Assembly: GCA_038496445.1 (NCBI GenBank)
Contig: JALMLS010000122.1
Location: 1-64,000, forward strand
DNA: 64,000 bases
Reading direction: 5' to 3'
Source: Trichosphaerium sp. ATCC 40318
Lineage: Eukaryota > Protista > Tubulinea
How positions within the stretch are numbered: position 1 is the stretch's first letter; the number at the start of each line of letters is the position of its first letter. The position numbers and the translations under genes are program-made. The notes below the pieces were generated by a model, which made no database searches, was not told the origin of the DNA, and saw only the letters and a program-made list of their open reading frames with translations. Shown here piece after piece: positions 1 to 34,548 of this stretch.

Positions 1-3000
1 CATAGCTTTATCAACATCTAGTTTTAGTATTGGTAAACTCAACATTGCACTGGTCAAAGGCCCAGTAATAGGCGTTGTAACAGCTGTTCCATGTGCAGCT
101 GATTGTACATCTTCTTCTTGTTGCTGTTGCACGTCCTTCTGATGAGTATCTGGTGTCTCAGCTTGTATCTGTTGGGTTGGTTTTGTGTGTAGGCAAACCG
201 GGCGTTGTAGGAGCTGTTCCGTGTGCAGCTGATTGTACATCTTCTTCTTGTTGCTGTTGCACGTCCTTCTGATGAGTATCTGGTGTCTCAGCTTATCTGT
301 TGGGTTGGTTTTTGTGTGGTAGGCAAACCTGACATTGTAGGAGCTGTTCCGTGTGCAGCTGATTGTACATCTTCTTCTTGTTGCACGTTACTGAGCAAGA
401 TTTATCTCTATGGTCGGTTCTTGCGAAGCCGTTAAATCAGGCGTTGTAGGAGCTGCACCATGTGCAGCTGATTGTCTTCTTCTTGTTGTTGCACGCTATC
501 CTGAGCATCTGTATCAAGATTTATCTCTCGGGTTGGTTCTCGTGAAACTGTTGTAGCAGCTGGTGAAGATGGCACATTTGTTGTCCTACGATGTTGTTCT
601 GGATTTTGAGCTCTGTCTTCATCTTGTTCTTTTTGTTGGTTTTCTTGTGTTGGAGCAGGTGCATTTGTAGGAGTGGTAGCATTGTTACCTTTAGTGGTGG
701 CAGCGGCAATGGCTTGAGCAGCGGCGAGCTTCAGCAGCAGCAGCAGCGACACGAGCTTCGGCAGCGGCAATGGCTTGAGCAGCGGCACGAGCTTCAGCAG
801 CGGCAGCAGCAGCACAGCGAGAATTGACATCTGTTGGTGGAGGATCAGCAGCGGCATCTGGTTGAGGGTTGGGCTCATGTGGTGGAAGATTAGTAGTGGC
901 ATCTGGTTGAGGGTTGGGTTCATGAGGAGGATTAGCAGTGGCATCTGGTTGAGGTTGGGTTCATGAGGAGGATTAGCAGTGGCATCTGGTTGAGGGTTGG
1001 GCTCATGAGGAGGATTAGCAGTGGCATCTGGTTGAGGGTTGGGTTCATGAGGAGGATTAGCAGCGGCATCTGGTTGAGGATTGGGTTCATGTGGTGGACC
1101 ATGTGCATCACGCTGACGACGAAGACGATGACGATGATTAGGAGGGGGTTGGTTATTGTCGATAATAGTGAAACGAAAGTCAGGATTGCTCAGCCTAAAA
1201 CGTGCAAGAGCAGCATTGAATGAAGCATTCATATGCCGAGTATCACGAGACCCATCAGGCATAATCCGTTGCTTGTGAATAACATCTAGATCATCAGCCA
1301 TCATATGTTTCTCATCGCTATCAGGTGTACTATAGTCCTCTGAACTGTCGGAACTGTCGTCACTGCCTCCCTCGATGATAGGTGGGTCAACATAGCCTGA
1401 AGGCATGTCTCCATCCCACTGTGGGTATTCATCAATGTGTTTTGTTGACTCTACCATCCTTTTAATGGTGGCTGCCATCGTTTTTGATGTGGGGAGTTTA
1501 TCACGGTATCGTTCTCTTCTTCGTTTCCCAAAAAAATCAACTACAAAAAAAAAAAAGAGAGTTAGTTACAAAGTTTCAAACAGTATTTTGTGGTGACGTA
1601 CGCATATTATTCTTGCCTCCCAAAGGATAAAATACATGATCTACAAAGCGAGCTACACTCACTAGGCTTACATTAGTGAAACTAGCCTCAAATCTTCCAC
1701 TCCATATGCCCGTTGCAAACAACAAGTCCAAATTAAAGCTTGCAGCATCTCGATACGCCCGTGAGCGAATTATTTCCATGCCTTGGTACGTCTCACCCAA
1801 ACGAAACTCTTCCATAATGTTGTGTATCTGCGTGTACAGTTAGGCCAAAAGAGAAAGATCGGTTTTGGGTTTGTTTAATCTACGTACATTGTCCAGTATG
1901 TGGTCACAACAGATAAATTTTCGTACAACAGCCCCTGCGTTTGACTTAACACGTCCTTGTCTAATTGCAAGCAACAGCTATAACCTTTATGAGTCCAACA
2001 AAGGGTGCAAAGGTTAAATAGAAACATACTTGGCTTGCAGCAATTGTGTTGTGACAGAACACTCTATTGGCAAATATCTTGTAGGGAAAGCCTGCCACCT
2101 TTACACCGTTTTCGAAAAGCTAAAAGAATGTCAGTCAATGTCAATGAACGTCCATAACGTACAATGTCCAACTTTGCTTCATGCTCTTTAAACAAGGTGA
2201 GGTTTTGTATCACAAAAAAACACGATTTCATAAACAGCTTTATTCCCTGTGGTTTAAAGATCTTGGATGCCTGTGAAATACACACAACATGTTTCTTTAG
2301 CTATAAACATTTAAAAGACTAAAAATACCTAGAGTGAAACACTGTACATACCTCGTGCCAGCGTTTATCATCAAGCAGATATTTTGGCTTCCAGTCTCTC
2401 CAACGTGGACGTGGTACTGTTTTGCCTTCTGCTTGTTGCTCTTTGGTGTAGTCTGCATGTAACCTTCTGAACTTCTTCCACAGCCTTTGTACCTTAATGC
2501 TGTATGTGTAGGGAACTACACACAAATTAGCTTTGTATAAAAGGGCAGCTCTTGTTAGTTCACCATACCGACTTGTTGCTGTATGTCGTTATCGTGTATA
2601 ATCTTGTCTAGCGCATTATGGTAGCCAGTGTACGGATTCAAGAAGGTGATGTTTTTTCAGTACCACACCGTACGCTTTGCATTTAAGGCTAATACATCTT
2701 GTTTAGTAGGTATTTGAGAAGAAGGCTACGCACGCAAAGTCAGCCAAACAGCAGTGTGCCCCATCTCCCAGTATGAGTGCGTCTGTACCTTTAACTTTCA
2801 CCCACATTGCCTTTGTCAATGAACGTGGAGTCTAATAAGCAAGTGAGTGTACACACTAATTGCAACAAACGTACCTGAATTACGAACAAAATTAACTTTC
2901 TGCAGAAAGTTTTTCAACGTGTAGTCTCTCACAGACAAAAAGCCAACCACATCAAAGAGATACCAAATCATATGCCGCATATATCTTTTGAGTTTTGGGG

Positions 3001-4033
3001 TTCTTGTTTTGTGTAAGGCGTAGTGTCTAATTTTTTTCAACTCTTCAAAGCTTAATAAAGATGTTAGAACTAATTTTTATCTTTCAAATTAAAAACAATA
3101 TGTTGTACGCCGGTATAATGGCCTTGTAATTCTGTAATGATTCCAATATCAGAGACATTTTATAATACTTTGTGGCAGCATATTGGTGTACAGGAGGAGT
3201 CAGTTGTTTGAGACAAAAGGCTCTAGCCAAGCGCCCTTTTTCAGCCAATATTCTGTATGTAAAAAACTTGGTGGTGCGCTCGTGAATGAAGGTCTCTGTC
3301 AAAACAGAAAGTTCGTCGTCCTTAACACGTTTCAAATTGATAACCTTGAACCAGTCGCGGTTGGGGTCTTGCAAAATGGTCAATGCATCGCTAAGAGTGG
3401 TTTGTTCCTAACATTAAATTAAAAACAATAGCAATCAAAAAAATGTAGTGTAGAAATGAGAAATATTACTTATGTACGTACTGCTGTGCCAGCGTCATGG
3501 CCACGTAGCTCTTCCTGTACCTCTTCTGTCAAACGGTTACGTAATATTTCTTTTATCTCCACTGGGTCGCGCAATTTGCCGTATGCACCGTGCTGTGTAA
3601 GTTTTAGCTCTCTAAAGGTGAGTTAACGTTAAAAATACAAAATCGAGGTTTTCAAAGGGCCAAGTTATACAAAACAACCACGTACTTGTAGAGCAAGTTT
3701 GTTTCTCCCTTCTTTGTTATCAAACTGTTCAAGTTTTCTGCATTCCAATGATTTAGCGTGTCCCCAGCCACAAACCTGCGTATGCGATAGTGGGTTTCCA
3801 AACAAGCTAATACAGGTAAAATACGTTAGTTTGTTAAAAAAAATAGACAAAACTAGACAACAGTGCAGTTTTTACGCCTGGCACGTTGTAAAAAGTTAAA
3901 GTAGTGAAAAAAACGCACGTGCGTTGCTGTCTATAATCCTCTCCTTATCTTGTTTGTACCAACTTGCTTCCAATGCAAGCCTACTAGCAAAGCACGGTAC
4001 ATCCATAGCATCTAGATTAACAACCGTTGACAT
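1..4033 (-). CDS. Large multi-exon orphan protein (gene A), 3'-partial, with low-complexity Pro/Gln/Ala repeat C-terminus; some apparent frameshifts
   Basis: ATG at 4033 (MSTVVNLDAMDVPCF...). GT-AG introns join ORF fragments 3665-3850, 3084-3383, 2816-3040, 2319-2525, 2064-2285, 1576-1815 and 432-1478. A frame is still open at the window edge. Frameshifts near 2650-2800 and ~955 (decay or assembly indels). Confidence 0.6.
60..500. repeat. Degenerate ~130 bp tandem repeats (about 4 units) in the coding tail of gene A
   Basis: Recurrent GTGCAGCTGATTGTACATCTTCTTCTTGTTG units near 93, 224, 354 and 463. Confidence 0.85.
835..1097. repeat. 42-bp coding tandem repeat (PPHEPNPQPDATAN, about 6 units)
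   Basis: Repeated GGCATCTGGTTGAGGGTTGGG(C/T)TCATGAGGAGGATTAGCAG. Confidence 0.9.
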
Positions 4034-5270
4034 ATACCTCTTTATTTTTGAGTTAAGTCACCCTAGCACTCAGTACAAGAAGCAAAATTCCACATTTACC
4101 ATTTCCTACCAATAAAAGCGCTTACATGTACCTTTAGCGCTGAAACCGAAAAAAGTGCTCACGTGAATTCACTTCAGTGAATACTAGCCTCGAAAACCGA
4201 ACTTTTGCTAGCAGCGCTGAATCTTTCTCAGGTACTTTGTTTTAGTCTTACGAACGTTTTTTAACCAGGTATACCATTCATAGAAAGTTAAAACGGTTAC
4301 CATGCCCTAAACACACTGCTTCCGTGCAAAACGGTGTGAACATGTGGAGACAAAAATACTTCGCTTTGTAAAGTGGCTGCCAACACACAAGCCCATACTT
4401 TACGCCTGCCATCAGCAAATGCAAGCTTACCCAACGACACCCAAGTATTTACAGCGATGTATACACTACTGTCGTTGCCCAGCAAACAACGCATCATGTT
4501 GCATGGCACGTGGAAAATGTTTTTCACTGAACAAGATTCTCGCTGGAGACGTGTTCAGTGAAACTGATATTAAACTTGTGCTGCACAAAATTGCGTGGTT
4601 GATGAGCGTGGTGCTACAAAACTGTTTTTGTTGTAACGCCACGCTCACCAACCATGTTTTATTTTGTTTTTCAAGCTCATAAAGCTTGGTCAACAATATT
4701 AAGCACTACGTTGGACCTTAAAACAACTATGAAGTGTGGTGAGCATGATTTACAAGCAATTACAGCTTGTACCGCATATTTGCGGCGAAATGCGAAAAAA
4801 CAGGTACAAACAAAGCTGAAACATCACGCAATGAGATGAAATCAACGCAAAGTGGTGAACCGGTACGTTGTAGCGCAATCCATCTTTTGTTGTCACTTGT
4901 GGTGGCAGTTTTGTACGTAACTAACCTTAGAATAGGCGCAGAAGCGCAAGGAGCAACAAACGGTACGTACTTTGTGCTAACAAGCAAATTTGTTTTTTTT
5001 TTGCTGATCTGCATTCGTTTGCATTGTATCCATCCTCTAATCACTAAATAGAAGCGTTTGCGATCATTGTGTTTAAGTTGATACCATCTTAACACAAACT
5101 TCATTACAAACACGGAGAACGCAACCACACACACTTGGGGCTTAATCGAACAAGTACGTTGTTTTTGAGCGCGGCGCAAATAGCGTATTGCAGCTCTAAA
5201 CGCTCAACTTTAGCTAGAAAAAAGTGCTGTGACCTCGTCTTTGCATATTCCGACGAGTTTGCGTTTAAAG

Positions 5271-7962
5271 ATGGCTGAAAACCCACCTGTACGATCAACG
5301 CGTTAGAAACCATCTCCTATCATTCTTAACTCTTTTTTAGGCATGCAAACGCCAAATGGGACTACAAAACTGTACGTAATTCTCTTTTCCGTTTTTATCG
5401 CTTTTACGGCGTCTACAACTCTAAAAAAGCAACAGCGCGAAAAAACCAACGGTTAGTTTTTTTTATGTGTTCGAAACAAACTGTACACCATTTCTTCTAC
5501 TTTTTCATTTCAGCGCCTTCTTGGCCGTTTTCAACGCCTTTTTCATCAAATTTTAGGCTAAAAACGCTTATTTCTTTTTAGATTTTACAGGTGTGAGCCT
5601 AATCGCTACACAAGACCCTGTAATCAACAGCGCCAACTCAATAGCAGAAAAAGATGCTTTGCTGTTGCCCATGGACATTGTACGATTAGAGGGCTTCATA
5701 ACGTCCAGAGATGTCCTGTCCCCTGAAGAAAAACAGTAATACCTTTGCTACTGCCTTCACTCACTTGTTTAGGTTAATTGGCCCTTTTCATGGCAGTTCA
5801 GACCTAGTACTAGCTCACGAAGGTTCAAAGTTGTACGTACAGAGTTTTATTTTCCTTCTTCTTTTCTTGTTTACATGCGTTATTACAATTACACATTTCT
5901 GCTGTGCTTGCAGCTGTAGTTAGCGTGACATTGATTATCTCTCTGTTGCACGTTGCCTCACTGATTATTCTTTGGGGTTGAATCTACGCTGTGTTGCTTG
6001 TAATGGCTTGAGTGTTTTGTTTTCTCTCTTTTCTGCTTTTGAATTGCCTTTTGGATGTCACCCAACTACATTGAGCAGGACATTGATCATCTCTGTCCTG
6101 TGTTGTGCCCATTGATCATCCTCTGGGACTGAACGTGTTCGTTGTGGTGCCGTTGTAGAGTATTTTTCACGTTGGCAACATCATTTCTTGTTTTATTTTG
6201 CGTTTTTCTTCTATTGTATTTCACCTACCGCTTTCTTATTTACTTTATAGTCCTCTGCAACAATTTAAAGACCAATTGGAAGCTATAAACCCCTCATCAC
6301 CGACCTCACTGTTGAAAGCCATAAGCGACGTGTTTGATATGTTTGATGACACACGAGATATGCCTTTGAAAGTGCAGTAATAGAAGAGTTGATGATACCG
6401 ATGAAAGCAGAGCAAAAACAGTTAATACACCAAACATTGGTACGGTAGATGTATCTCCTGTAGCCACGGTGCTTATTGTTTGAGGTAGAGCCAACATTTG
6501 GACTTTTTATATGCCAATTACAACGCTTGCTACTACTCTCCTAGCCAACGTAAGCGCATGTTGGCGGCCTGTTTTCTTTTTTATCGGTATTGTTTCGATT
6601 TCTAAAGTGAATAGATAGATACTTACTGTATTTTTAGCTTGTTGTATAAACCTGGCCTGACATCTAGACACAGAAGAAGTAGAAAAGTGAGAGAGAAAAA
6701 GAAGCAGCTTGCAGCTTGGGTACTGACAAACAGTGCATTCTATTCTTTATTAGGACTTTTTGTGATAACACTACGCTTTAGAGCCATTTCCAAGCGGTGT
6801 ATTTTTTACGTGTCAACTGCAGTTTGTGCAACGATTCCGCCAAAACGGTTCCCTTTGGCAACAAGGTGGCCGATAGCGTCTTTTTTAACAACCACTATCC
6901 CATATGCACTTACGGTTATGGCGATGAGGACAGTTACAGGCAAGCACCACGCCATTCGTCAAACAGATGCTTACTTTTGGTAGCAAGTCCAAGTTGAAGA
7001 TAATCACCGTTGGTTACAATGGCTCTCTAAGAGATAATCGCCTCAAAGGTGATTTAAAAAAGTTGCACAAAGGTTACGTGGACGACTCTAATGGCATCTC
7101 ACTGGCAGCTGCTGCGGAGCTGAAGCGATTGGCCAACCACTACTTCGATGAGGTACTAAAGAGATGCTGCAACACAACGCGTATACTAACACCTGTTACA
7201 AGCCATCACCGCCAAGTATGTATGGAAGGGAAAAACCCAAAAGGTACAGCACTTTGGGTCACTCCTATTACCGCCTTTACACCTTGGGTTTGGATCTGCT
7301 GAATTGCAGTTATGACACTGAGAAGGAAAACAGAGCGTTACACTTGGATTTGCTGTGTGCATACGCTACCAATCCTCACTGGGGCAAGGTCTCGGACGCT
7401 TGGAAGATGAGCGACAAATCCACGAAAGCCTGCAAAGCATTTCTTCAGAACAAAGGTGTGCTTGCTTTTCTTTTTTTTTTTGTTTTGTTTTATTTACCAT
7501 TTCAATCACCAACCCCTCTTCAAGGAGCAAGAGAGTACCTGGCGCAGAGATTTCACCCATTGGCAGTCAACAGGTTACGTCAATTGAACCCTCACGTAAT
7601 GTTCACTGGCCTTCATGAACAATGGCTTAAATTATTGCCAGGCACTCCTGTCTACAAATGGAAGCATTTGATCATGGTACTTGCACATTTTTGTGGCTTT
7701 AAACTGCGTGTATACCCAAAAAACTCATTCCATTTAGATCCAAAAAGAAGTGAAATCTATACAAGTGCTTTGTACAGTGTTGCGCTGGCCCGTGCTTAGC
7801 GATCCCAACCAAAAGAAACAACACCACTGCATAGTGTTCAACATAGCGCCTTGTCAACAACCTTTTGGATGCATGAAGTACGAGCAAATACCTTTTCTAG
7901 TGCGAACATACTACAAGCCAGAGATTGAAAAGTTTTTAAAAGAGTACAACTATACTAAATAA
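5271..7962 (+). CDS. Multi-exon protein with a C-terminal domain resembling bacterial UDG-superfamily proteins
   Basis: Spliced model MAENPP|ACKRQMGLQN|...|...YPICTYGYGDEDSYSKSKLKIITVGYNGS...NHYFDE|...NCSYDTEKENRALHLDLLCAYATNPHW...LRQLNPHVMF...YNYTK*. Introns include 6940-6983 (GC-AG) and 7153-7202 (TACTAAC branch point). One apparent frameshift near 6350. Confidence 0.6.
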
Positions 7963-8468
7963 ATACATTTCCCCAAAAAAAGTGCTACTTTAGTTTTTTT
8001 AGCCTACAAAAGCTGCATAAGAGACGATCTATGACTTGAACACATTTATTTACTACAGGTGACTATTTTACAGAGGCTACACCACGACACACAACTATTA
8101 TGGAGCGTACGTATAACGATCAGCAAAAAAATTAACGGTTTTTTTTAAAATTATTTTCAAAAAACGATAAAACGCAATAATACCGTTTCGTACCGTATTA
8201 GCGCTACAAACCTTCTTTTTACCTTTTAAAATTATTAGTTTTTTGCCCCTTTTTTCTAAAAACATGTTTTTCTTTTCATTGTCCTGTTAAAAAGTGCACT
8301 TACTGGTGTTTACCTACAAGAGCGTGCTTAAGAGTCGTATGTACATACTAACAACTTCTCCTTGTAGGTGATCCCCCACCAAATGTAAATTTCTCAAATC
8401 CTGGATCTTTGAGACTCGTCTTCAAAGTAATAGATGGTCATGTTACTGTATCCTTAGTAAAACACAAC

Positions 8469-9432
8469 ATGGCACAATTTTCCTATAGCGAATCTGGTAT
8501 AGACGATTCACAAATGGACATAGATGACCCTGGCTCAGACTCAGACTCAGACTTTCGCTCAGACTCAGACTCAGACTTTCACTTTGACTCTGACTCAGAC
8601 TCTGACTCAGACTCAGACTCAGAATCAGACTCAGACTCTGACTCAGACTTTCACTTTGACTCTGACTCAGACTCTGACTCTGATTCTGACCGTGACTCTG
8701 ACTCTGACTACGTACCGTCAGGTTCTACAACTTCGGACTATAGCCAACTTCATGGAGATGACTCCGACTCTGATGACACACCGTCAAGTTTTACAACGGT
8801 TTCGCCTATGTCTACAGCTACACCAAGTACTACGTACGTTTGGTAAGACAGAACACTGTTCTTACTTTCTTGTCAGCACAGAAGATGCCAGCACAGAAGA
8901 TATACAAGAACACCTGCGGAAAAAATTTGCAAATGCTCCAGAAGCGTACATCAAAGTTGACCCAGTGTTCCCTGGGTTTTATGAATTAATAGCTCATCTA
9001 ACAAACGCTACCCCTACACCTACACCTATAACAGATACTGCGCACGTTTGGTAAGACAGAACAATGTTCTTACTTTCTTGTAGTGGATCTGACAGTGCAG
9101 AAGATTCAGATGAACAGCAACTTTCAAATGCTCCAGAAGCCTACATCCAAGTTGATTCTGACTCTGACGCCAATAAGACACCCTCAGGTGCTACAACGGT
9201 TTCACCACCTAGACAAAACACTACGCACGTTTGGTAAAACGGAACAATGTTCTCATTTTCTTGTAGTGGATCTGACGACGCTTCAAGCTTTGAAATTACA
9301 ATTCTTCACTCAGGTGACGAAGCAGAACCAATGCAGGGACAAGACCATAGCCCTGACATTCAGTCACAGGAGGAGGAGGAGGAAGAAAAAGTAGTTGACT
9401 TCTCTGTATTTTTATATTCACAATCAGAATAG
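8469..9432 (+). CDS. Ser/Asp-rich acidic low-complexity protein, 4 exons built by exon+intron duplication
   Basis: [13 protein letters not shown]..., (SD)n tract at 8535-8710, three near-identical phase-2 introns, NAPEAYI(K/Q)VD repeated in exons 2 and 3, stop at 9430-9432. Confidence 0.7.
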
Positions 9433-9561
9433 AAGAAAAAAAAAAAAGCTACACAACAATAAACTTTTTTTTAAAAATTAATTAGCTTTACTTTTTATTG
9501 GCATAGATTTACACTTATCACATTGACCAACAGGTGAAGCTACCACAATCTATCACTCACT

Positions 9562-10509
9562 TTAAGCCCTATCATCTTCCTCCCAACACCTCTTACTCTT
9601 CCGTGCGCCTTTCTCGTACTCGTCCTGCCTCTTTAAACGCCCACTTTCATACCACTCGGTGTACTTGCCATGTGGTCTACCGTAAGCGTACGCACACTGT
9701 GAAACCAGGTTGCCACCCTCATAACAAAATGACCATCCATGTCGCTTGTTGTACCGGTACTGTTTTATATATCGCAGCGTTTGGTCGTTGTTCCACTTTG
9801 TGACCAATCCGTGTTTGCAATCGGTAGAATGTTGCACAGACCTTGCACCTATTTTATTGATACAACCGTAGCATTTGGGTGAAATGGCATTTTCTAGCAA
9901 ACTGGAGATCATCTTTCTGTTCATTGGGTGTGGAACAACAACTTCGCTATCTGTTGGACGATTGTATATCAGCTCTTCGCGCCCACCAAGATGGTTGAAC
10001 AGGTGCAAAACCTTCACATACATCTTACCACCATCTACACAGATTTTGTACGCGCAAGTGACTTCTTGTGACTTTATCTCATACATCTCTAGTTCAATGA
10101 GATAGCTGGTATCGTTCATTGTTTCTGTTGGATACGTTACTCGGAAAGCGCTCAGCATTCGCCCTTTGTAGTAACTCACAGCCAGGTCCACACGCTTGAA
10201 TCCATCGTAAGTTATACAATCTCCATGCATTTGCCCATTTACAAAGTTGAATAGCCTACTCTCAGATCTCCACATGCCGTGCTTATTCCAGTTTTCGTCA
10301 AAGCGTAAAAAGGAAAGCTGGCTATCCAAAAGCGGCCACACTTCGTTCACTTTCAAGTCCAATTCCATTATCATCATCTTTAATTCTGTTGGCAAAGTCA
10401 GCAGTGTTCGAGCCTACAAAAGACGAAAAAACAAGGTAAGGATTCATAGCAAGCCAAAATCTCTCCATCTCACCTTGGTGTTGCCGCTAAACCTCTTTTT
10501 AGCTGCCAT
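9562..10509 (-). CDS. F-box-like + MORN-variant repeat protein
   Basis: Exon 1 10474-10509 (MAAKKRFSGNTK), intron 10414-10473, then LLTLPTELKMMI (F-box-like) and MORN_2-like repeats (HGKYTEWYESGRLKRQDEYEKG). Confidence 0.8.
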
Positions 10510-10833
10510 CTGTGATGTTCAGTGTTATAGATGGGTGTTTATTAATTATAAACAATTGCTGCAACTAAGAATGATGTAATTCTTACATAGTTTTTTTGTA
10601 GATTTTCTGGATTGTACATTGGAGTTTTATAGGAAAAGCCACGTGATAGTATGTTTTTTTTTTTCCTTTTAAGTCAACACTAATTCACCACAGTGTAGTT
10701 TTATTAACATATAATCGATCGATTCTTGCGCTAGAAGGCTTCAGGTATGTAGTACTGGTATCTCCCTTCTTTTCTTTTACCTTTGCGCTTAATACCAGTA
10801 AATTAGACTTATATGTCGTTCTTTAGTTACATT

Positions 10834-13800
10834 ATGAGCAAAAAAGTATATCCCACAAGGCTGTGCCCCATGTGCCACAAAGAATTTTCAACACACAACT
10901 TTTCAGCACACTTGCATACAAAAAGTCACCAGGCAAACGTTTTGGCGAAGCTGTGGGAAGTGCGCTCATCCAATAGAGAGCCACCGAACAAAAAAGCACG
11001 CACCAGCGATGATGTTGCTTACGATGAAGTGCTACATGCCAGTGAACAAGTTCAACAACAACAATTGATGCAAAATACCACAGAACCAGAACCTCAACCA
11101 GAACCTCAACCAGAACCTCAACCAGAACCTCAACCACAACCTCAACCACCGCTGCCATTAATGGAGCAAACATTCGTACAGTCAGACATGCTTTACGAAG
11201 CTGGTGATCTACTAATGGAAACGGAGACACAGTGTGTAGATAGGTGTTTAGCCGTTGGCAGGCCATTTCTCTCTATTAGCACTGCTTCATCAGAAGAGAA
11301 GGTCTTGTACCTTGCTAAAAAACTCCAATTGGAACAACAGCTGTCTAATGAAAACATGCAACTCTGGTTCAAATTTATATCGTCCGTGTCAACGCTTGTG
11401 GGAAACGCAGAAAACACAGAAGGTGAAAAGGCCTTCAATTATGAGCATTTGACAAACGACCGAGCCAACAAAGCCTTCAATCTGGTACTTCTCATGACCT
11501 CTTTTCCTCTTTTAGCTCACTTGCTTTACCAGTACACTCCTACGATAGAGCTCAGCACCATGCACGTAAGGACCAGTGCCACAAAAACCAAAGAACTCTT
11601 ATATGTGCAGCCGTCCCAGTATGTCAAGCTGCTCATGTCTCACCTGGTAGACAGAAATGCTATAAACGACACATCCAAGTATGGCTGCACTATACCTAGA
11701 GTGAATATGGACGGTGAGGAAGAGCAAATCCACGTGGTGGCCGGTCCAGAAACGGGAAAGCGCTACAAAGAACTTTTTGATGACGTTGAGAAGATAGAGG
11801 AAAACATCAGACTTGCAGGTACAACTTTTGTTGCAGTTTTTTTGTTCCCCTCCTCAAGCCAATGACCGTTGTGTAGCCTACCTGTGTCACGACAACTTCA
11901 CTTACGATAAGAGAGACAGTCTAGGACCCTTGTATTTTGTTATATGGAACTTGCCTAACAGTGAAACAATGCAAGGGATAATGCCTTTGATGGTATTGCC
12001 GGCACAAGTGAACATGGAAGACGCTGCAAAGTATGTCGTTGACGATTTGAAATCGCTGTACAACGGCATAGAGTGTTACTCACAACCCTTGGAAAAGGTG
12101 AAAAGCACGTTTATTTCTTTCTTTTAACGACAAAATAGACTTTCAAAGTGTACGTCAGGTTGGAGAAGATATTGGGGGACATACCTGGAATATGCAAACT
12201 CTTGAGTACGGTCTTGTTATTGTGTACTTTGCGTGCCATTCACCTCATTTTCTCAAAGGTATAAAGAACCACGCTTCGAAGATGCCTTGTAGAGTTTGCA
12301 AAGTATCCAGCAAGAACATCAAACTAGGTATCATGGATGTTTGCGAGGATAGAAATATGACGGACACCAGAGTGTTGAAAGCTAGACTGAGTCAGGCGGA
12401 AGAGGAAAAGCTCAACATCCTCTGTTTGAGAGCTTGGGTAATGGAACTTGTTTTTTGCCTCTGCAATTTATGCCCGTTTTCTTCTAAAGCTTGCATTTTA
12501 GAGTCCATTTTTGGATTTACCTGGCTTTGACATCTACCATCACACCCCTTATTGTCCTTTTCACAATATCATTCTGGGAGTGTCTAAAGCTATGATCAGC
12601 GCCACTGTAGAACTGCTGCAACAGCGTATGGTAGATTACAAGAAAAAGTTGAGAGAAAAAGTAGCCTGGTACTTGCACCAAAAGCACGTGCACGTCATCA
12701 AGTAATGCAAACGGTTTGGTTGCTTTGCGCTCATGCGACTGTAGAACTAAGGACCTTTGGGACAGCCATGGAGAGCTTGATACTGAGCGTGGCTGGGATG
12801 GTACTGACTTCAAATCCTTTCTGCAGATGGCTTTGTTCGTTTTAAAACCGTATTGTACCAAGGACGAGATGTCCGTGTGGTGAGTGTAGTTTTTTGGGTT
12901 TTTTTGGCTGGAATGTTTGTGACCTTCTATTGAAGGAAAGTTTTCTTGGGTTATGTGGCCCTGATTTCTAAGGACTTTTTGCGTACAACGAGGTTGAACG
13001 AGTTCACGACCGAGGCTGCGAGGTTGTTGAACCTGATGCAAAAGCATTTGCCAGGTACCTGTCATTATTGTGGTGATTGGCTGCTATCTAACTCTATCTT
13101 CCATAGGAGCAAAAACCTCTATACCCAACTTTCACGCGCTGTTTCACCACTCGAAACACGTCGAGATGTTTGGCATGCCCAAACACTACAGGTAACGGCA
13201 TTCTGTTTGTTGGGTGCTGACTGGGTTTTTTTAAAGCACTTACGCTTGTGAATCCAGGCACAAAAGGATAAAGAACTGGAAGAACTCCACCAATGGCTTG
13301 CACAAAGAAAAGTGAGAAATATTAGGTCCGTGTTGAGCTGACGCCGATTGCTAGTGACATCATGAAGCGTGAGGCGGCTTTGTTTGCCTCTAATGTGGCT
13401 GCGGATCTGGCCACCTCATTGGTGAGTGTAGGAAAGCCACCTGCTGGTAGAAAAACGTACTTTGGACACGAGGTGACCGTGCCCAAGTTTTACAACATCC
13501 CACAGGCGTCTTGGACTTTGCGTGAGCGCCCTCTTCTCTCATTCTTTTGTTTGCTGATCTGTTTCGCGCAGATAACGCTAAAAAAGTGCAACTCACAAAG
13601 CGACTGAGAGACATCTGGTTGAGGGACATTGCCCAGGAGCATCACAGACAACTGGATAGCAGTGTGGTGATGTATAAATCGGCCAAGTGCGAATCTAGAG
13701 AGATTGCTCTGTTTACAAACACTGAGACTTGTTTCAAATCCTGGAGACCTATTCATGGTGAGGACAGAAGTAACTGCATTTATTTGGAGACGACCAACAT

Positions 13801-14129
13801 TATAAGGATGAAAGAGGAAATTTACGTGTTTGGCAGGTAAAGTTGCTGTGCTTTTATTATAATCACATTGCTGCTGATAAATCTCTTTACAATGTAGGTT
13901 GTATAAACTGGTAAATCAGATAGATAGGTATGACAAACTCACTGACTTGGTTATGTGCGTTGAGTGGTGTTTTCTTGGTTTTGTTGACATCAGTTGCAGG
14001 TTGGAGAGAGCTGGCGACCTTGCTTGTGTACCTTTGAGCATGGTGTTTAGGCTTGCTTGTGTTGTGCCTGATCCTTGTGAACCTGAGCACTATTTGGATA
14101 ACTACTATCAGCGTGCAATACCAAATTGA
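10834..14129 (+). CDS. CACTA/CMC (EnSpm/Plavaka-like) DDE transposase with N-terminal C2H2 zinc finger, multi-exon
   Basis: CPMC..HLHTKSH zinc finger, then HDNF..SLGPLYFVIWNLP (first D), LGDIPG (second D), PCRVC, PFHNIILG, FHALFHH and STYACESRHK (E). This is the D-D-C2C-xH-H(3-4)H-E order known for CMC transposases. Confidence 0.85.
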
Positions 14130-14205
14130 TGGCGATAGCTTTGTACATGATTACATGTAAGTTTAGAATAAAATTTCATGAGGCATGTTTTGTTTGCCAA
14201 AAGTC

Positions 14206-14347
14206 GAATTCCATATGAATTTATATTTTGAGTTGGGGTTTTGTAAATGACCTATATTCTGATTCGATATGAAATCCACTAATCTGTGTATTTCCACAAG
14301 ATTTCAGATAGAATTCATCATGAATTCCATATTTGAAATTGGTACTG
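14206..14347. repeat. Subterminal short repeats at the putative right end of the CMC element
   Basis: GAATTCCATAT at 14206 and 14322, with variants GATTCGATATGAAAT (14261) and GATTTCAGATAGAATT (14300), ending in ...AATTGGTACTG. Confidence 0.5.
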
Positions 14348-14926
14348 AAGGCACCTGTTGTAGCATCATACCGTACTAATTCAAACACACAATATGATTG
14401 GGCGACCTTTGTTGTGTACCTTTTAGAACACAATCATTTGGTTGCTGGAGATTATTTTGTGGTGGACAATGCTCGTGTCCACAGTGCCAAAGAAACTTTT
14501 TCAGAGATATATGAAGCTTGTGCTTTACGAGGAGTACACTACATATTTCTGCCAAAGTATTCTCCGGAACTCAACCCATGTGAACTTGTTTTCGCTCACA
14601 TAAAGAACCATTTGCGTTACAGACGCCGAAATGATACTTTTTGGTATGAAATAGCCAAAACAATGGCTACTGTAACTAGAGAGCTTGTAGAAAGTTTCTA
14701 TGATCATTGTGTACACATGCGTTTTTAAAATAAATAAAATTTGTTATTTTGTACACGTGGGTTTTTTTTTTTTCTTGGAAGTGTTCTCTGGCTTCCGCAT
14801 CACCTTGAAATTTGAATATTTTTGTCAGTTAACCGGTTAGCATAGAAATTTAGAAATTTTCACCAGATAACTAATTTTCGTGCACAACCAGTTAAATTTT
14901 GACCAACTTGACTGAAACGGACAATA
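14348..14926 (+). mobile_element. 5'-truncated IS630/Tc1-mariner transposase (DDE_3 C-terminal part) with possible right terminus
   Basis: ORF 14333-14728 contains VVDNARVH...FLPKYSPELNPCE (38 residues between D and E). The first D and the HTH are missing. Downstream sequence ends ...GAAACGGACAATA just before a poly-A tract. Confidence 0.8.
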
Positions 14927-14927
14927 C

Positions 14928-14928
<1 letters not shown>

Positions 14929-14982
<54 letters not shown>
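14929..14982. repeat. Poly-A tract (~54 nt)
   Basis: Direct reading. Confidence 0.95.
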
Positions 14983-14987
<5 letters not shown>

Positions 14988-15384
14988 AAAAAAAAATTTG
15001 TAGCTATCTTCATTGACATCTAGTTTCATTACCTGCTAATAATGTTTGAGTTACAAGCATGTTAAATGGCCGTAGACGTAGAAATAGTGAGGTGTTCCTT
15101 TAGGAAGTTAGTTTGTTGCTAAAAAGCGGTGAGAAAGTAAAATCGAGTTAGTGTAGTTGATTTTAGCGTGTAAAAGCAGAATAGAGAATTAAATCAGATT
15201 ACCAACGAAATACAAAAGAAAGGCCAGCGGTGTGACTAAAAGTACTTTAGCATGTCAAACAAAGCTATAGCATTAAACTGTGTGTGCTTTGGGCCCATTA
15301 TGGGCGTAAAGGGCTCTGGAGAGTGTAGAGATAACCTAAAGGTGTAAAATAAAAGATATACTGAAGAGAAGCTGCATTCACTGG

Positions 15385-15462
15385 GCAGTTAAGCCGGCCT
15401 CCGAGTTGGTTGAGCTAATGTGTTAGTTGTTATAGCGTGGCATCCAATAATGTCATGAACAT
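15385..15462 (-). pseudogene. Relic of an F-box/LRR gene N-terminal linker
   Basis: Minus strand reads VHDIIGCHAITTNTLAQ, matching IHDIIGYHAITIKTPTQ of the adjacent gene. Confidence 0.55.
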
Positions 15463-15572
15463 TGTCTACAGTCGGTTAGTTGATAGAAAAGAGGAGACAA
15501 AGTGCAATAACTCTAACTAGTGTTTATTAAATACACAAACTTGCCCCATTTACTGTAACTTTACATTTGTAG

Positions 15573-17150
15573 TTAAAAACTATGTATTTTTGCCCCGATA
15601 AGTGCTTTAATACCTTCATCAGTAACTGAAGTGTTTGTGAGGTGAATCTTATGAACTCCAACAAGTGCTTTAATGCCTTCGTCAGTTACTGAAGTGTTAT
15701 TGAGGTTAATAGTATGAACTCCAGCAAGTGCTTTAATACCTTCATCAGTCACTGAAGTATTTTTGAGGTTAATCTTATGAACTCCAGCGAGTGCTCTAGC
15801 GCCTTCATCAGTTGTTAAAGTGTTATCAAGGTCAATTGTATGAACTCCAGCAAGTGCTTTAATGCCTTCATCAGTAACTAAAGTGTTTGTGAGGAAAATA
15901 GTATGAACTCCAGCAAGCGCTTTAATACCTTTATCAGTAACTGAAGTGCGACAAAGGCCAATAGTATGAACTCCACCAAGTGCTTTAATACCTTCATCAG
16001 TTACTGAAGTGCCATTGAGGCGAATGGTATGAACTCCAGCGAGTGCTTTAACGCCTTCATCAGTTACTGAAGTGCTTATGAGGGAAATAGTATGAACTAC
16101 CTTTAGTGCTTTAATACCTTCATCAGTCACTGAAGTGTTAGCAACGTGAATAGTATGAACACCAACAAGTGCTTTAATACCTTCATCAGTTACTGAAGTG
16201 CTATAGAGGGATATAGTATGAACTCCCTTCAGAGCTTTAATACCTTTATCAGTAACCGAAGTGCGAGCTAGGTCAATGGTATGAACTCCACCAAGTGCTT
16301 TAATGCCTTCATCAGTTACTGAAGTGTTATAGAGGGATATAGTATGAACTCCAGCAAGTGCTTTAATACCTTCATCAGTTACTGAAGTGCCATTGAGGCG
16401 AATGGTATGAACTCCAGCAAGTGCTTTAACACCTTCATCAGTTACTGAAGTGTGACAAAGGTCAATAGTATGAACTCCCTTCAGTGCTTTAATACCTTCA
16501 TTAGTTACTGAAGTGAAATTGAGGCAAATGGTATGAACTCCAGCGAGTGCTTTAACGCCTTCATCAGTTACTGAAGTGTGACAAAGGTCAATAGTATGGA
16601 CACCAGCAAGTGCTTTAACGCCTTCGTCAGTTGCTGAAGTGCGACAAAGGTCAATAGTATGGACACCCTTCAGTGCTATAACGCCTTCGTCAGTTACTGA
16701 AGTGCGACAAAGGTCAATAGCATGGACACCCTTCAGTGCTTTAACGCCTTCATCAGTTACTGAAGTACGACAAAGGTCAATAGTATGGACACCCTTGAGT
16801 GCTTTAACGCCTTCGTCAGTTACTGAAGTGTTATTGAGGGAAATAGTATGAACTCCAGCAAGTGCTTTGACAGTGTTGTCATAAAAATAAGGTACTGAGA
16901 TTTTTGTGTATTTAAGAATCCCAGGATGTTTTACAGCTGATTTTGCTTGAGTTGGCGTTTTAATCGTAATAGCGTGGTATCCAATAATATCGTGAATAAT
17001 AGAAGCAAGCAAATGACATGTCTGACAAGCTGCAAATCGCGATTTGGTCGTTTGGCGTAAGATATGCGCTAATATCTCGGTCGGTAGCTGTAGCAAACTT
17101 GTGCTGGTGGTACTGTCAATTCTACAACCCTTTGAGGTAGAAAGCATCAT
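15573..17150 (-). CDS. F-box + 20 x 21-aa leucine-rich repeat protein (intronless)
   Basis: LLQLPTEILAHIL F-box and GVHTIxLxxTSVTDEG(V/I)KALx repeats. Confidence 0.92.
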   Translation of the reverse strand: MMLSTSKGCRIDSTTSTSLLQLPTEILAHILRQTTKSRFAACQTCHLLASIIHDIIGYHAITIKTPTQAKSAVKHPGILKYTKISVPYFYDNTVKALAGVHTISLNNTSVTDEGVKALKGVHTIDLCRTSVTDEGVKALKGVHAIDLCRTSVTDEGVIALKGVHTIDLCRTSATDEGVKALAGVHTIDLCHTSVTDEGVKALAGVHTICLNFTSVTNEGIKALKGVHTIDLCHTSVTDEGVKALAGVHTIRLNGTSVTDEGIKALAGVHTISLYNTSVTDEGIKALGGVHTIDLARTSVTDKGIKALKGVHTISLYSTSVTDEGIKALVGVHTIHVANTSVTDEGIKALKVVHTISLISTSVTDEGVKALAGVHTIRLNGTSVTDEGIKALGGVHTIGLCRTSVTDKGIKALAGVHTIFLTNTLVTDEGIKALAGVHTIDLDNTLTTDEGARALAGVHKINLKNTSVTDEGIKALAGVHTINLNNTSVTDEGIKALVGVHKIHLTNTSVTDEGIKALIGAKIHSF

Positions 17151-17923
17151 ATCGTCTATATTTGTCTAATTACTAACAGCTAGCTGTGATAGAGGAACCC
17201 ACAACGTTGAAAGTAAGTATAACAGCTGTTTTATTACGAATTTAAGTCACGTGATACTGCGGTCAAAAATAACAAACGGTGTACTAAAATGTCGAAAAAA
17301 AGTAGAACAAAAGTGATATGAACTGTTCGCCACAAAGGGAGCAACTGGGTTATGGCGCTCAGTCGCCGGTAGACTCTGCCCCACCCCACAACCCCCTAAA
17401 AGGGGGCTTTCTAAATAGTTCCTGTCTATTACGCCTTTCTACAATCACGTGATTGCATGTTTGCCTTGCATTACATGAGAATACAAGACACGGCATTACA
17501 GTAATTTGTCAATGCAATGTCATGATGTAAATGGTAGAACTGGAGGCCAATTGTGTGAAGTGTAGCTTCAATGACAAAAGGGAAGGAGAGTAAGGTTTGG
17601 TATGAAAATGGTGGATTCTTTATGGAGTGCTTGAAGGAACACAACACATATAACATAGCAAATATGTACATGGTTTAATAGAATGAAGGCACGAAGAATT
17701 CTAGCATTCATTTGGTAGACGTTTGCAGTCTCCAACGAAACAAGATGGTTTCATTATTATTGATGAGGTACTATTCAATTGAGTTTGTTCTAGGTCAAGG
17801 CCTCAAAATAATTACAACCATTGTTTGTAATGCTAGGTACTCAAACTAATGTAGGTGCCTTTACAGGCAGTTTCGGTAGTTTTTGTTTTTATTTTTTATT
17901 ATGGTCATGTTAACAACCCGATC

Positions 17924-20279
17924 CTAAGCTGTTGGAGGTTTCTCAAATTTCCATTGTTGATTGTGGTTATTTGTTCCATACGTATACAAATACACATTCC
18001 TGTAAAATACACAGTTAACAACTGAAAGTCATTATAGGAATTAAAAAAAGTTGGGCGTACTGGTTGTTTGATCCTCCATTATTACCATCAATAGAGTAAC
18101 GAAGGTCACGCTTTTTTAATCTATACGTAAATGCTTTACCAGATACTAAGGACCTCTCCCAATGTTGGTTTCCGTTATCTTGATCACACTCAATAAGCTT
18201 CAAGTTCCTGGAAAAAAATGTAAAAATAAGCATTGTTTTCTTTCGATAAGAGCCCTTACTGTTTATTTGCTGCGCCGGTTCCTCCATCGAGACAATATTT
18301 TGTATATCGCTTGCGGTACATGTAATATTTTTCATGTTTTGTTTCAACCCAGTGCTGATTTTCGTTTTCATCATTGTATTTGTACAGATACACATTATTG
18401 TTGTTTGCATTTGGCTGCTTCTGTGCTGTCAAAGCATACCCAAGTGCATTCTCCTTTCTCATGGTATATACCTTTTCTGTGTGTGTATAGGAAAGACAAG
18501 AGTCAATTCCGCTAAGCTTACCACATCCCTGGGCTTGACTGTGCCTCGAAAACCTGAGCCATTTGTTTAAACTGGAAAAAAAATGATAAGTCAAATAGAA
18601 GGTCCATCTGAGACATTACTTGTTTGTAGGTATGGTTGATTTCATTATACCAGATTTATCTGGGTCGTGTTCCATATTCAGAAGATGCCCAATTTCATGT
18701 GCAGTCAAAATAACTCTTTTACGAGTGTCACTTCGTTGAGTGACTTCTGCTCCAAAATCGACTTGGGAACACATACGACCTAGTGTGGCTGATCCTAATG
18801 CCTTTCCCGGATCGCAGTTGTGATAAAGTAACACGAACGCTTCTTCGCGACCATCGTCACCATATGGATATCTATTGTATACCCACGAATTAAGATTATC
18901 GAGTATTTGACCTCTGTTCTTGCAAGTCCAATTAGCAGCTAAAAAAAAAAAGGTTACAACAGATATTTTCTTGCAGTATGAAATTGTTCTTCCACGTACA
19001 ATAGTCATCACGGTCTTCCATTATTAATAGTTCTGAAACGACAAGTTTTACATTCTTTGAAATGAGAATAAGTACACTGCACACTCATAAAGTTTTTGAT
19101 TACAAAAAATACACTTACAAGTTCTTCATTGTATATTGCATTTACGCCATGAATGTCTAACAAAAAACACTGATTTAGAACACATTTAAAATAGCACTGA
19201 TTGACGTACTATTTGTAACATAGTCAACTGAACCGTCAACACCTCTATCATCGAAAAGACTTTCATCAACAACTGCAACCTTTTGGGACTTTTAATGATA
19301 CAGTATTTAATAAATATTTATTGTACCATACGGAGAACCCTTAATGAAGATGGACAATTATCAGGCGGAGGCACTAGTGGTGTTCTATCTCCCATAGGGT
19401 AAGATCTTTACAAAGTTAGTAGAGGTCGAGTGCGAAAAGAAACAAATGTCCAAACCTTCTTGAACGCTTGTGTTGATGCTTGTTAAAACGAATTCTTTCG
19501 TTACATAAATCACAACCGATTGACTCTTTGCGTTTTAAATTGTTCGGCCTGTTAATTAAAGAAGAAAATTAGAAATGCTTTAAAGTAAAAGAAAAAACAA
19601 AGAAAAACAGAAAATTGACTTTTCGTACGTGAGAATCACGTGAGTGGCTGAACCAAGTTTTTGTAAATGATGTGGTGACATGTATTCAATGTGTCTAAAT
19701 AGCAAACGGTTGTTAGTATGAGACTACGCACAACAAGTACGTTGAACGAGAACTTACTTTTTCGCTGGTTCAATGACAAGCATTTCATCATCAACAAATA
19801 GAATACCTTCTATTGTTCCATCTTTATGAGCCATAAACCGGAATCTGTAATTGTCATTGATAGATTTGAAGGTCTTTGAAGGAACAGGAATATACTTCGT
19901 GCTGTTTCCTGTACCCAAGATAATCTTAAAAGTCTCATGAGAAAAAAAAAAGATAAAAAAAAAGTACCCTAGAATCAACACTGAACGGCGAATCTTTGAT
20001 GCATTCAACTGTCATGTTACCACTACTTTTGTTCACTTTTAAGATATGAACTCCTTCAGCGCTTCGTTTTGTTGAAAGTGATAAATCAACTACCAAAAAT
20101 TAGGTCTTGAGATACAAATACACCGTAGTGTTCGCACTCGAAGTGACGACTTCAAACTCATGTACGTTATCCCAGTACTGTTTATCATAGCAGAAAACGG
20201 CATTAACTAGTAGAACTATCGAAAATAAGTTGTTAATATAACCCTTTTGTATCTTACCAATGAGTGCGAGCTTCCACAT
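17924..20279 (-). CDS. Secreted M12B/reprolysin-like zinc metalloprotease with C-terminal ricin-type (QxW) repeats, multi-exon
   Basis: Signal-like start MWKLALI, HEIGHLLNMEHD...GIM (Met-turn), and NQHW/NQHW/NQQW repeats. Confidence 0.85.
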
Positions 20280-33546: not shown

Positions 33547-34548
33547 ATGACTTCCACATCAAAGCTTTGTAGAACTCGAACTGACAGCGCAGCCAGTACG
33601 TTCTCACTGATATGGCTTCCTGTAGAGATAATAGCGCACATCTTACGCCATACCAAATCACGAGCTGCAGCTTGTCAGACATGTCATTTACTTGCTTCTA
33701 TCGTCCATGACATTGTTGGATACTACGCTATTACAATTAGTACTGATGCTCAAGCAAAATTTGCTATAGAGCATCCGGCGATATTAAAAAACACTAAAAT
33801 CACCCTGGCAAGTCGAAGCTTTGATAAACAATTTGCTAGAGTTCGTTCTTTTGGTCGCAGATGTATTTCAGTAACAGATGAAGAGGTTAAAACACTTGCC
33901 GGTGTTCATACTATTGACCTTGCAGATACTAGCGTATCTGATGACGGCATTAAAGCGCTTGCTGGTGTTCATACTATCTTCCTTTCTCGCACTAATGTAA
34001 CAGATGAAGGCGTCAAGGCACTTGAGGGAGTGTATACTATTCACCTAGATAACACCAGAGTAACTGATGAAGGCATTAGCGCACTAGCTGGCGTTCATAC
34101 TATTTACCTAAGAAACACTTCGGTGACTGACGAAGGAGTCAAAGCACTTGCTGGAGTTCATACCATTCAGCTTAGTAACACTTATGTAACTGATGTCGGT
34201 GTTAAAGCGTTGAAAGGCGTTCATACTATTTTCCTTGATAACACTGATGTAACAGACGAAGGCGTGAAAGAACTCGCTGGCGTTCATACCATTAACCTTG
34301 GTTACACTGCTGTAACAGATGAAGGGCTCAGAGCACTTGCTGGCGTCCATAGTATTAACGTCAGTTTCACGAAGGTAACTGATGAAGGTGTTAAGGCACT
34401 AGTCGGAGTTCACACCATTGAGCTTGAAGACACTTACGTAACTGATGAAGGTGTCAAAGCGCTCGTTGGTGTACATAGTATTAAAATTAGTAACACTGAT
34501 GTAACTGTTGCATGTGTTAGAGCGCTGGGAGCGAAATATATATGTTGA
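33547..34548 (+). CDS. F-box + ~10 x 21-aa LRR protein (intronless)
   Basis: LIWLPVEIIAHIL and GVHTIxLxxTxVTDEGVKAL repeats; paralog of 15573-17150. Confidence 0.92.
   Translation: MTSTSKLCRTRTDSAASTFSLIWLPVEIIAHILRHTKSRAAACQTCHLLASIVHDIVGYYAITISTDAQAKFAIEHPAILKNTKITLASRSFDKQFARVRSFGRRCISVTDEEVKTLAGVHTIDLADTSVSDDGIKALAGVHTIFLSRTNVTDEGVKALEGVYTIHLDNTRVTDEGISALAGVHTIYLRNTSVTDEGVKALAGVHTIQLSNTYVTDVGVKALKGVHTIFLDNTDVTDEGVKELAGVHTINLGYTAVTDEGLRALAGVHSINVSFTKVTDEGVKALVGVHTIELEDTYVTDEGVKALVGVHSIKISNTDVTVACVRALGAKYIC

Follow-up and report, generated by a model that had tools for sequence, protein, structure and literature searches.

A diverged, putative Brig3-type DNA glycosylase gene with introns beside a Plavaka/CMC-type transposase gene in the amoeba Trichosphaerium

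The DNA analysed here is a stretch of 64,000 nucleotides (nt) from Trichosphaerium sp. ATCC 40318 (assembly GCA_038496445.1, contig JALMLS010000122.1, positions 1 to 64,000), hereafter the window, in which an earlier reading made without database searches (the sequence-only reading) had pointed to an intron-containing gene of bacterial type at positions 5271-7962. In our judgement it is probable that the exons at 6782-7962 of the + strand belong to a eukaryotic gene encoding a diverged, putative Brig3-type DNA glycosylase of the uracil-DNA glycosylase (UDG) superfamily, which was horizontally acquired and lies beside a transposase gene of Plavaka/CMC type. The bacterial family to which this protein is related, its predicted fold, the residues of the putative active site and the surroundings of the gene are reported below.

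Within 6782-7962 the reading frame changes four times, and each change is spanned by a short intron with standard ends, so that five exons are joined across four introns (44-69 nt), three of them GT-AG and one GC-AG. The spliced exons give an open frame of 957 nt (about 318 residues), closed by TAA at 7960-7962. Domain exon 1 (6782-6939) encodes an N-terminal helix region and the YGYGD motif, which corresponds to the WFGD of the bacterial family; the match to the hidden Markov model (HMM) of the family runs here from profile position 22, and the exon is also covered by a full-length alignment. It is followed by intron 1 (6940-6983, GC-AG, 44 nt, GCAAGC...GGTAG) and by domain exon 2 (6984-7152), which encodes KLKIITVGYNGS and then HYF. 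Intron 2 (7153-7202, GT-AG, 50 nt) contains TACTAAC at 7184-7190, and domain exon 3 (7203-7455), the best-conserved part, encodes a Tyr-Tyr pair, NRALHLDL and ATNPHWGK. Intron 3 (7456-7524, GT-AG, 69 nt) is T-rich and can be read through in frame, its join having been picked by intron-like composition and not by homology. Domain exon 4 (7525-7676; ...RLRQLNPHVMF...) aligns colinearly with the family under MAFFT, its Pro 7590-7592 falling on P162 of the bacterial members, and after intron 4 (7677-7737, GT-AG, 61 nt) domain exon 5 (7738-7962) carries CIVFNIAPCQQPFG in place of the GxNxxGxPFG loop of the family, with a weak colinear match at profile positions 216-241. The motif string given by the sequence-only reading (PICTYGYGDEDSY-S-KSKLKIITVGYNGS, then HYF, then LNCSYDTEKENRALHLDLLCAYATNPHW, then LNP) is exact in the sequence, and both the GC-AG intron and the TACTAAC-bearing intron that it had described are present.

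Removal of intron 1 gives the exact 14-residue spacing of the family between the Gly of FG and the Thr before NPS, with the distances from this Gly to Tyr (+5), to Ser (+8) and to Thr (+14) exactly as in the bacterial members. Therefore, this join is validated by homology. The joins 7152/7203, 7455/7525 and 7676/7738 lie in variable regions and were placed from splice signals and the open frame only; homology backs the gene within 6782-7962 and, therein, exons 1-3. The guanine plus cytosine (GC) content is 44.7% in the exons, with 54% at third codon positions (GC3), vs. 38.4% in the introns, and the GC3 is like that of the neighbouring open reading frames (ORFs). The published Trichosphaerium genome has 37.7% GC, a mean intron length of 75 bp and a mean exon length of 154 bp (PMC10521059), and the composition and intron sizes found in the window fit these values. 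The spliceosomal introns and host-like composition of this gene agree with the sequence-only reading, and, judged by such features, the locus is to be read as a genuine eukaryotic gene and not as contamination.

A profile of 68 bacterial members, from which the amoeba sequence was excluded, was compared with the 2,772 stop-to-stop pieces of the window. The unspliced piece 7152-7796 ranked first (E 7.4e-9), followed by the adjacent and colinear piece 6928-7299 (E 0.054), and the spliced amoeba protein matched the family profile with 71.8 bits (E 3e-24). A phmmer search with the part from exon 3 to exon 4 against 1.84 billion representative sequences found only two bacterial proteins, P0001 (2.6e-6) and P0002 (8.7e-5); P0001, with 40% identity over the matched stretch, is the nearest relative, none closer being found among these representatives. 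The uncharacterised bacterial family that the sequence-only reading had invoked does therefore exist, as this search and the follow-up profile searches showed. The alignment runs end to end, and of the 34 columns conserved in at least 80% of sequences 19 are identical in the amoeba protein, 7 are conservatively changed and 8 are lost. In the tree, the amoeba sequence falls within a group of 42 rows with a Shimodaira-Hasegawa-like approximate likelihood ratio (SH-aLRT) of 96; it must be noted that, since the tree has no outgroup and only one eukaryotic member, the direction of transfer is not readable from this topology. Comparison of each exon piece with Pfam and NCBIfam gave no match, including none to Pfam UDG, and a feature search of the ESM Atlas with exon 3 gave no usable match. 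Taken as a predicted protein, the product of the amoeba gene is a diverged member of this unnamed bacterial family.

Starting from P0002, a word-indexed search yielded 32 and a profile search 71 cluster representatives; the latter carry either no name or the label 'hypothetical', and all of them are devoid of Pfam domains. Comparison of 31 bacterial members with Pfam and PADLOC gave no match, and the UniRef name of P0035 (Candidatus Borkfalkia) is 'Uracil-DNA glycosylase-like domain-containing protein'. Scanning of genomes turned up 25 loci, for the most part in bacteria of the gut and rumen (Alphaproteobacteria, Succinimonas, Spirochaetaceae, Kiritimatiellae, many Clostridia, Erysipelotrichales, Melainabacteria and Bacteroidota). 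The family thus comprises about 70 sequence clusters, found in bacterial contexts only and distributed patchily over at least eight phyla, and its tree is not congruent with taxonomy. One IMG/VR contig carries a member, in a setting more like a defence island than a phage. Besides the amoeba gene, no eukaryotic relative was found in the sequence searches (1.84 billion representatives), the genome scan or a shape search of the ESM Atlas.

The fold was examined on an AlphaFold2 model of the bacterial protein P0002, and not of the amoeba protein, built from a 31-sequence alignment with a predicted local distance difference test (pLDDT) of 92 and a predicted template modelling score (pTM) of 0.90. 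The best 50 Foldseek matches of this model in the PDB were all UDG-superfamily enzymes, and the ESM Atlas shape search returned bacterial hypothetical clusters (template modelling score, TM, 0.8) and then a PF03167 UDG cluster (TM 0.60). Through these structural matches the family shows the alpha/beta fold with a four-stranded parallel beta-sheet that characterizes the superfamily. Strand 44-48 of the model leads directly into N50-P51-S52, that is, into the place of motif A, which carries the catalytic Asn and reads GINPG in MUG/TDG and GMNPG in SMUG1; its equivalence to the GINPG of MUG/TDG is inferred from topology only. The family shares with family-4 UDG, MUG/TDG, SMUG1 and UdgX this alpha/beta fold and the position of motif A with its catalytic Asn at the end of strand 1. 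Unlike the canonical UDG repair enzymes, to which there is no sequence-level match, it has a different motif B, an additional conserved H-x-D and an aromatic cage. A PDB sequence search with the family profile gave only chance matches to antibodies, and no conserved cysteines able to hold an Fe-S cluster were found in the family. On the predicted structure, the bacterial family has the UDG fold, as the sequence-only reading had guessed.

Brig3 was described by Mejia-Pitta et al. as a UDG-superfamily 5-hydroxymethylcytosine (5hmC) DNA glycosylase from a soil-metagenome defence island, homologous to Brig1; the Brig3 operon also contains BapA and a gene of ADP-ribosylglycohydrolase type (bioRxiv 10.64898/2026.02.25.707755). 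Its crystal structures reveal an aromatic cage formed by F31, W100, F101 and H125, plus Y97 and the P51 peptide; N50 acts with a metal and water at the glycosidic bond, the backbone of S52 and the side chain of E55 bind the 5-CH2OH group, E55 confers 5hmC specificity, and D127 is the essential acid (bioRxiv 10.64898/2026.02.25.707755). Also reported are S139, R140, the DNA-backbone Arg R197 and the wedge residue N225 in an insertion loop; mutating N50 or D127 abolishes defence and excision, and loss of E55 or W100 is also fatal to Brig3 (bioRxiv 10.64898/2026.02.25.707755). In P0002 numbering, the invariant or near-invariant columns of our family are F31, N50, P51, S52, E55, Y94, W97, F98, H123, D125 and W-[GS]-[KR] at 136-138, so that it has the same constellation of F31, N50-P51-S52, E55, Y-x-x-W-F and H-x-D. 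Identities agree with the reported Brig3 residues at 12 or more positions, with Y94, W97 and F98 answering to Y97, W100 and F101, H123 and D125 to H125 and D127, and W-[GS]-[KR] to S139-R140, the numbering being exact up to E55 and offset by 2-3 after a variable loop, and the GxNxxGxPFG loop is likely the counterpart of the Brig3 wedge loop.

The gene partners point in the same direction. In two independent contexts the family gene is followed directly by an ADP-ribosylglycohydrolase gene, which in another two lies in the vicinity, and a gene for a DUF2779/Cas4-like nuclease lies directly downstream in three, both matching the partners known at Brig1 and Brig3 loci. In four contexts the gene directly downstream encodes an unknown protein of about 320-385 residues with invariant HPG..E, FWGE.E and QNTDP motifs; the AlphaFold model of this partner (about 380 residues) had a pLDDT of 41, too poor to judge whether it contains a BapA-like ASCH double barrel. 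Given that the invariant residues coincide in identity and numbering and that the gene partners agree, we infer that the bacterial family is the Brig3 family, from the published residue numbers and gene partners and not from an alignment with Brig3.

The sequence-only reading had instead invoked Brig1, a UDG-superfamily anti-phage alpha-glucosyl-5hmC DNA glycosylase (Hossain et al., Nature 2024; PMC11078745). In structural comparison Brig1 comes nearest to the S. tokodaii enzyme, as does the bacterial family; ADP-ribosylglycohydrolase genes recur near brig1 and its homologues, and one distant Clostridium homologue lies between a WYL gene and a DUF2779 gene (PMC11078745). Brig2, which acts on modified thymidines, shares at most 20% identity with Brig1 (Getz et al.; bioRxiv 10.1101/2025.10.29.685425). 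Brig1 and Brig2 resemble the family in their superfamily, in their partner genes (ADP-ribosylglycohydrolase, WYL and DUF2779) and in their patchy, mobile distribution in defence islands. However, Brig1 differs in its substrate and in having N145-x-E147 in the pocket where the family and the amoeba protein have H-x-D, and a cross-check of accessions and organisms revealed no accession shared between the Brig1 homologue table and the family. The proposed tie to the anti-phage Brig glycosylases stands in general, but it is closer to Brig3 than to Brig1.

With respect to the active site, the amoeba protein keeps the counterparts of Brig3 N50 (Asn, codon 7018-7020), S52 (Ser 7024-7026), H125 (His 7341-7343) and D127 (Asp 7347-7349), that is, the catalytic Asn and Asp, the backbone Ser and the cage His. 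Unlike in Brig3, F31 is replaced by Tyr (6917-6919, in domain exon 1), P51 by Gly (7021-7023), E55 by Asp (7033-7035), and W100 and F101 by Tyr-Tyr (7266-7271). Motif A reads ITVGYNGS, with the catalytic Asn retained, and the change from NPS to NGS remarked on by the sequence-only reading is real. The Asp at the E55 position is a conservative change; Glu is invariant there in all 68 aligned bacterial members, and the residue that confers 5hmC specificity is thus not kept. The cage would consist of Tyr, Tyr, Tyr and His, all aromatic with three of the four changed, and the Y97 column falls on a Lys inside an insertion of about 19 residues before the Tyr-Tyr pair, where the alignment is uncertain. 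In addition, ATNPxWGK is retained, as are Gly, Thr and Tyr in the N-terminal motifs. At the presumed wedge loop, FNIAPCQQPFG stands against the family's GxNxxGxPFG and the aligned wedge column lacks Asn, in a region that is insignificant on its own. With Gly for Pro and Asp for Glu among the residues that read the substituent, and with Tyr at three aromatic positions of the cage, the specificity of the amoeba enzyme has probably been altered, and its preferred base would not be identical to the 5hmC of Brig3. The retention of catalytic residues together with the alteration of those that read the substituent argues for a shifted specificity over a wrecked enzyme, and it would also be compatible with early decay.

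As to the origin of the gene, the family occurs widely, if patchily, among bacteria, and no other eukaryotic member was found. The most economical view is that the amoeba received the gene from bacteria. An exceptionally high level of gene transfer from bacteria and giant viruses has been published for Trichosphaerium (PMC10521059). Most likely, a bacterial gene would have been acquired by horizontal transfer and then have gained introns and host-like composition, and it would now sit in a transposon-rich stretch. By analogy with Brig3, the enzyme would flip a modified pyrimidine out of the duplex into the aromatic pocket formed by the three Tyr and the His indicated above, and the N-glycosidic bond would be cut by the Asn of motif A and the Asp of H-x-D, leaving an abasic site. 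A bacterial defence enzyme may thus have passed into the service of a eukaryote or of its transposons.

The 5' part of the gene is less well defined. Domain exon 1 has no ATG from 6782 on, and at least one upstream exon is therefore required. A candidate exon at 6638-6719 (+) has an acceptor (tttttag/C at 6637/6638) and a donor (GTACTG at 6720), is in phase with 6782 across a 62-nt intron, and would encode a basic patch, RHRRSRKVREKKK, resembling a nuclear localisation signal; placed just before the glycosylase domain, it could function as such a signal. Further upstream, a candidate exon at 6251-6376 (+), which would encode an acidic helix-like segment (...QQFKDQLEAINPSS...DMFDDTRDMPLKV), ends at a donor (CAG/GTAATA at 6377) and is in phase with 6638-6719 across a candidate GT-AG intron of 261 nt (6377-6637). 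The segment 5271-6250 (+) may hold exons of the 5' end together with a long T-rich stretch serving as intron or promoter, as indicated by exon-chain enumeration only, and its comparison with Pfam gave no homology. Altogether 89 exon chains leading from an ATG to 6782 and free of frameshifts were enumerated, with differing starts that include 5271, 5343 and 5711. Frame 0 is open up to 6380 and frame 2 from 6353, so that the change of frame seen near 6350 by the sequence-only reading is real (6353-6380); that it marks a dead copy is not compelled, as the in-phase splice 6377-6637 avoids the shift. The long novel N-terminus postulated by the same reading was not substantiated: the frameshift-free models add only about 65-125 residues, in many alternative ways.

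Several points weigh against the reading of this gene as a Brig3-type glycosylase. The start codon is ambiguous among the frameshift-free chains; exons 4-5 compared alone with the family profile score 0.6 bits, which is not significant even though they are colinear, and therefore the presence of the wedge loop, of a residue answering to Brig3 R197 and of the latter half of the fold is predicted only; the identity with Brig3 relies on preprint residue numbers and not on a direct comparison of sequence or structure; the terminal branch of the amoeba sequence measures 2.66 vs. a family median of 0.26 (about tenfold); and the eight lost columns include the invariant P51 and the near-invariant W30, which is also compatible with decay. 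The locus may instead be a decaying relic: a glycosylase gene once acquired from bacteria, possibly as cargo of a transposon now dead, that is no longer expressed or catalytic. This alternative is a possible one, although we regard it as clearly the less likely. It would account for the very long branch, for the changes at the invariant P51 and E55 and the loss of the conserved W30, F56, Y94 and G212/G217, for the first homologous exon without ATG, for a C-terminal half that is not recognisably similar, and for the change of frame at 6353-6380 unless the 261-nt intron, four times longer than the others, is invoked; the transposon-rich surroundings, with a truncated DDE_3 fragment at 14387-14725, would also suit it. 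However, 957 nt over five exons have stayed open with canonical splice sites in the correct phases, the positions whose mutation is lethal to Brig3 (N50, D127) are kept together with H125, E55 and W100 are only conservatively changed (to Asp and Tyr), and the GC3 of the exons is raised as in the neighbouring coding ORFs.

Less probable still is that the fold has been kept while catalysis was lost or became secondary, the protein serving as a reader or binder of modified bases that, for example, targets or shields transposon DNA. The remodelled pocket and the departure of the wedge-loop region from the family consensus could be understood in this way, and Brig3 itself binds non-substrate DNA without excision (bioRxiv 10.64898/2026.02.25.707755). 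Against it, both catalytic residues (Asn and Asp) are retained, although a protein that only reads bases would have no need of them, and no precedent for a reader was found in this family. Finally, bacterial contamination, misassembly of a bacterial fragment and a housekeeping uracil-DNA glycosylase of the ordinary kind, for which the purely bacterial nearest relatives might speak, are rejected as most improbable: contamination is contradicted by the intron structure, in that four GT/GC-AG introns break the frame and no single bacterial-type ORF spans the gene, as well as by the position of the gene between eukaryotic-type multi-exon genes and by gene pieces at about 100% identity on five short contigs of a low-coverage DNA run of the same organism, and a housekeeping UNG by the absence of any Pfam UDG or NCBIfam match and by active-site motifs that are those of Brig3 and not of UNG, MUG or SMUG.

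The putative Brig3-type gene is followed on the same strand, 2.85 kb downstream, by a multi-exon gene that extends from 10813 to about 13840 (+), opens with a C2H2-like zinc finger and resembles the Plavaka/CMC (Transposase_21-like) transposases in protein-language-model features. By these features, piece 11813-12124 scored 0.91 to a Transposase_21 cluster and piece 12192-12527 scored 0.97-0.98 to clusters with Plavaka (PF18759) and Transposase_21, in agreement with the CACTA-type neighbour named by the sequence-only reading. No Pfam match was obtained for the pieces of this gene, and its first ORF, when compared with a sequence database, retrieved low-complexity matches only. The further claim that the glycosylase-like gene is borne by the transposon was not substantiated: a search for terminal inverted repeats in 1-20000, and between 1-5300 and 13300-15100, and one for CACTA ends gave nothing above chance, which also counts against a tie of the gene to the transposon. 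The gene is therefore beside a transposase and not demonstrably inside a transposon; the left end of the element may lie outside the window. Between the two genes there are Ser/Asp-repeat ORFs with internal repeats (8409-9432, +) without a Pfam match, and a 277-residue ORF (9562-10395, -) with a weak match to the MORN repeat (Pfam MORN_2, E 0.0043, below the curated cutoff). The DDE_3 fragment (+; Pfam E 7.7e-14, profile positions 63-139 of 146), a truncated Tc1/mariner transposase, comes just after the Plavaka-like gene, and the region is thus a pile-up of transposons.

Fungal DNA transposons of the Plavaka, EnSpm and KDZ groups carry TET/JBP dioxygenases, for which an escape from methylation-based silencing has been proposed (Kojima 2025; PMC12730594). 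As in these elements, a putative modified-cytosine enzyme gene adjoins a transposase of Plavaka/EnSpm/KDZ type (PMC12730594), and such carriage would be the closest conceptual precedent for the proposed role; unlike in them, the enzyme is a putative glycosylase and not a dioxygenase, the host belongs to another group, and the gene only adjoins the transposase. That Plavaka/CMC transposons of this amoeba carry a Brig3-derived base-excision eraser, which would strip oxidised methylcytosine or a related silencing mark from their own DNA, perhaps together with dioxygenases, as a two-step demethylation kit derived from a bacterial anti-phage enzyme, is a doubtful extension of our reading. The two roles put forward by the sequence-only reading, stripping silencing marks from the element or attacking modified viral DNA, would likewise be hypothetical. 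The amoeba gene differs from Brig3 also in its eukaryotic setting, with at least four spliceosomal introns and a eukaryotic transposase as neighbour, and probably in an N-terminal extension with the predicted basic patch. Moreover, a tblastn comparison of the bacterial partner genes with the window found no homologue, including no BapA or ADP-ribosylglycohydrolase.

Other features of the window were also recorded. Between the DDE_3 fragment and a satellite, an unbroken run of about 54 A occupies 14929-14982, and the sequence stays A-rich on to 15000; this run may represent the tail of a retroelement or have arisen in assembly. The satellite is a tandem array with a period of about 63 bp and copies 76-87% alike (15600-16868), and related arrays are found at 33864-34526 (-), 50877-51035 (-), 57150-57727 and 61738-62068, two of these four being inverted. 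An intronless ORF of 348 residues (432-1478, -) is full of repeats of the NPPHEPNPQPDA type and has direct repeats of about 130 bp on its 3' side (71-552).

In bacteria, the loci at which the gene is followed directly by one or another of the three alternative partners were L001 (6001-7512) and L006 (6001-7645); L017, L034 and L016 (identical to L032); and L015, L030, L031 and L041. Locus L015 has a NADAR-DarT1 gene (1083-2788) and a WYL regulator about 2-4 kb upstream of the Brig3-like gene, and in L006 a type I restriction-modification system immediately precedes such a gene; both settings are typical defence islands. Some members (P0007, P0008, P0011, P0019, P0049, P0050 and P0053) have an extra N-terminal domain of about 60-120 residues (V.H..YG.G.G ... 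KV.F), and P0058 and P0059 have a C-terminal extension of about 190 residues ending in a similar small motif; Pfam recognises neither the domain nor the extension of these members.

The papers of 2024-2026 on Brig-type glycosylases consulted here treat them only as prokaryotic anti-phage effectors and mention no eukaryotic homologue (PMC11078745; bioRxiv 10.1101/2025.10.29.685425; bioRxiv 10.64898/2026.02.25.707755). Beyond the amoeba, the bacterial family is now delimited, with its some 70 clusters, at least eight phyla and recurrent partners. In this regard, an intron-bearing amoeba copy beside a transposase would show that a Brig-type defence enzyme has crossed into eukaryotes, and its predicted protein would be a candidate modified-cytosine glycosylase outside TDG and DME/ROS1. 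If the tie to the transposon is true, it would parallel the fungal TET/JBP transposons, and anti-silencing by base excision would become directly testable.

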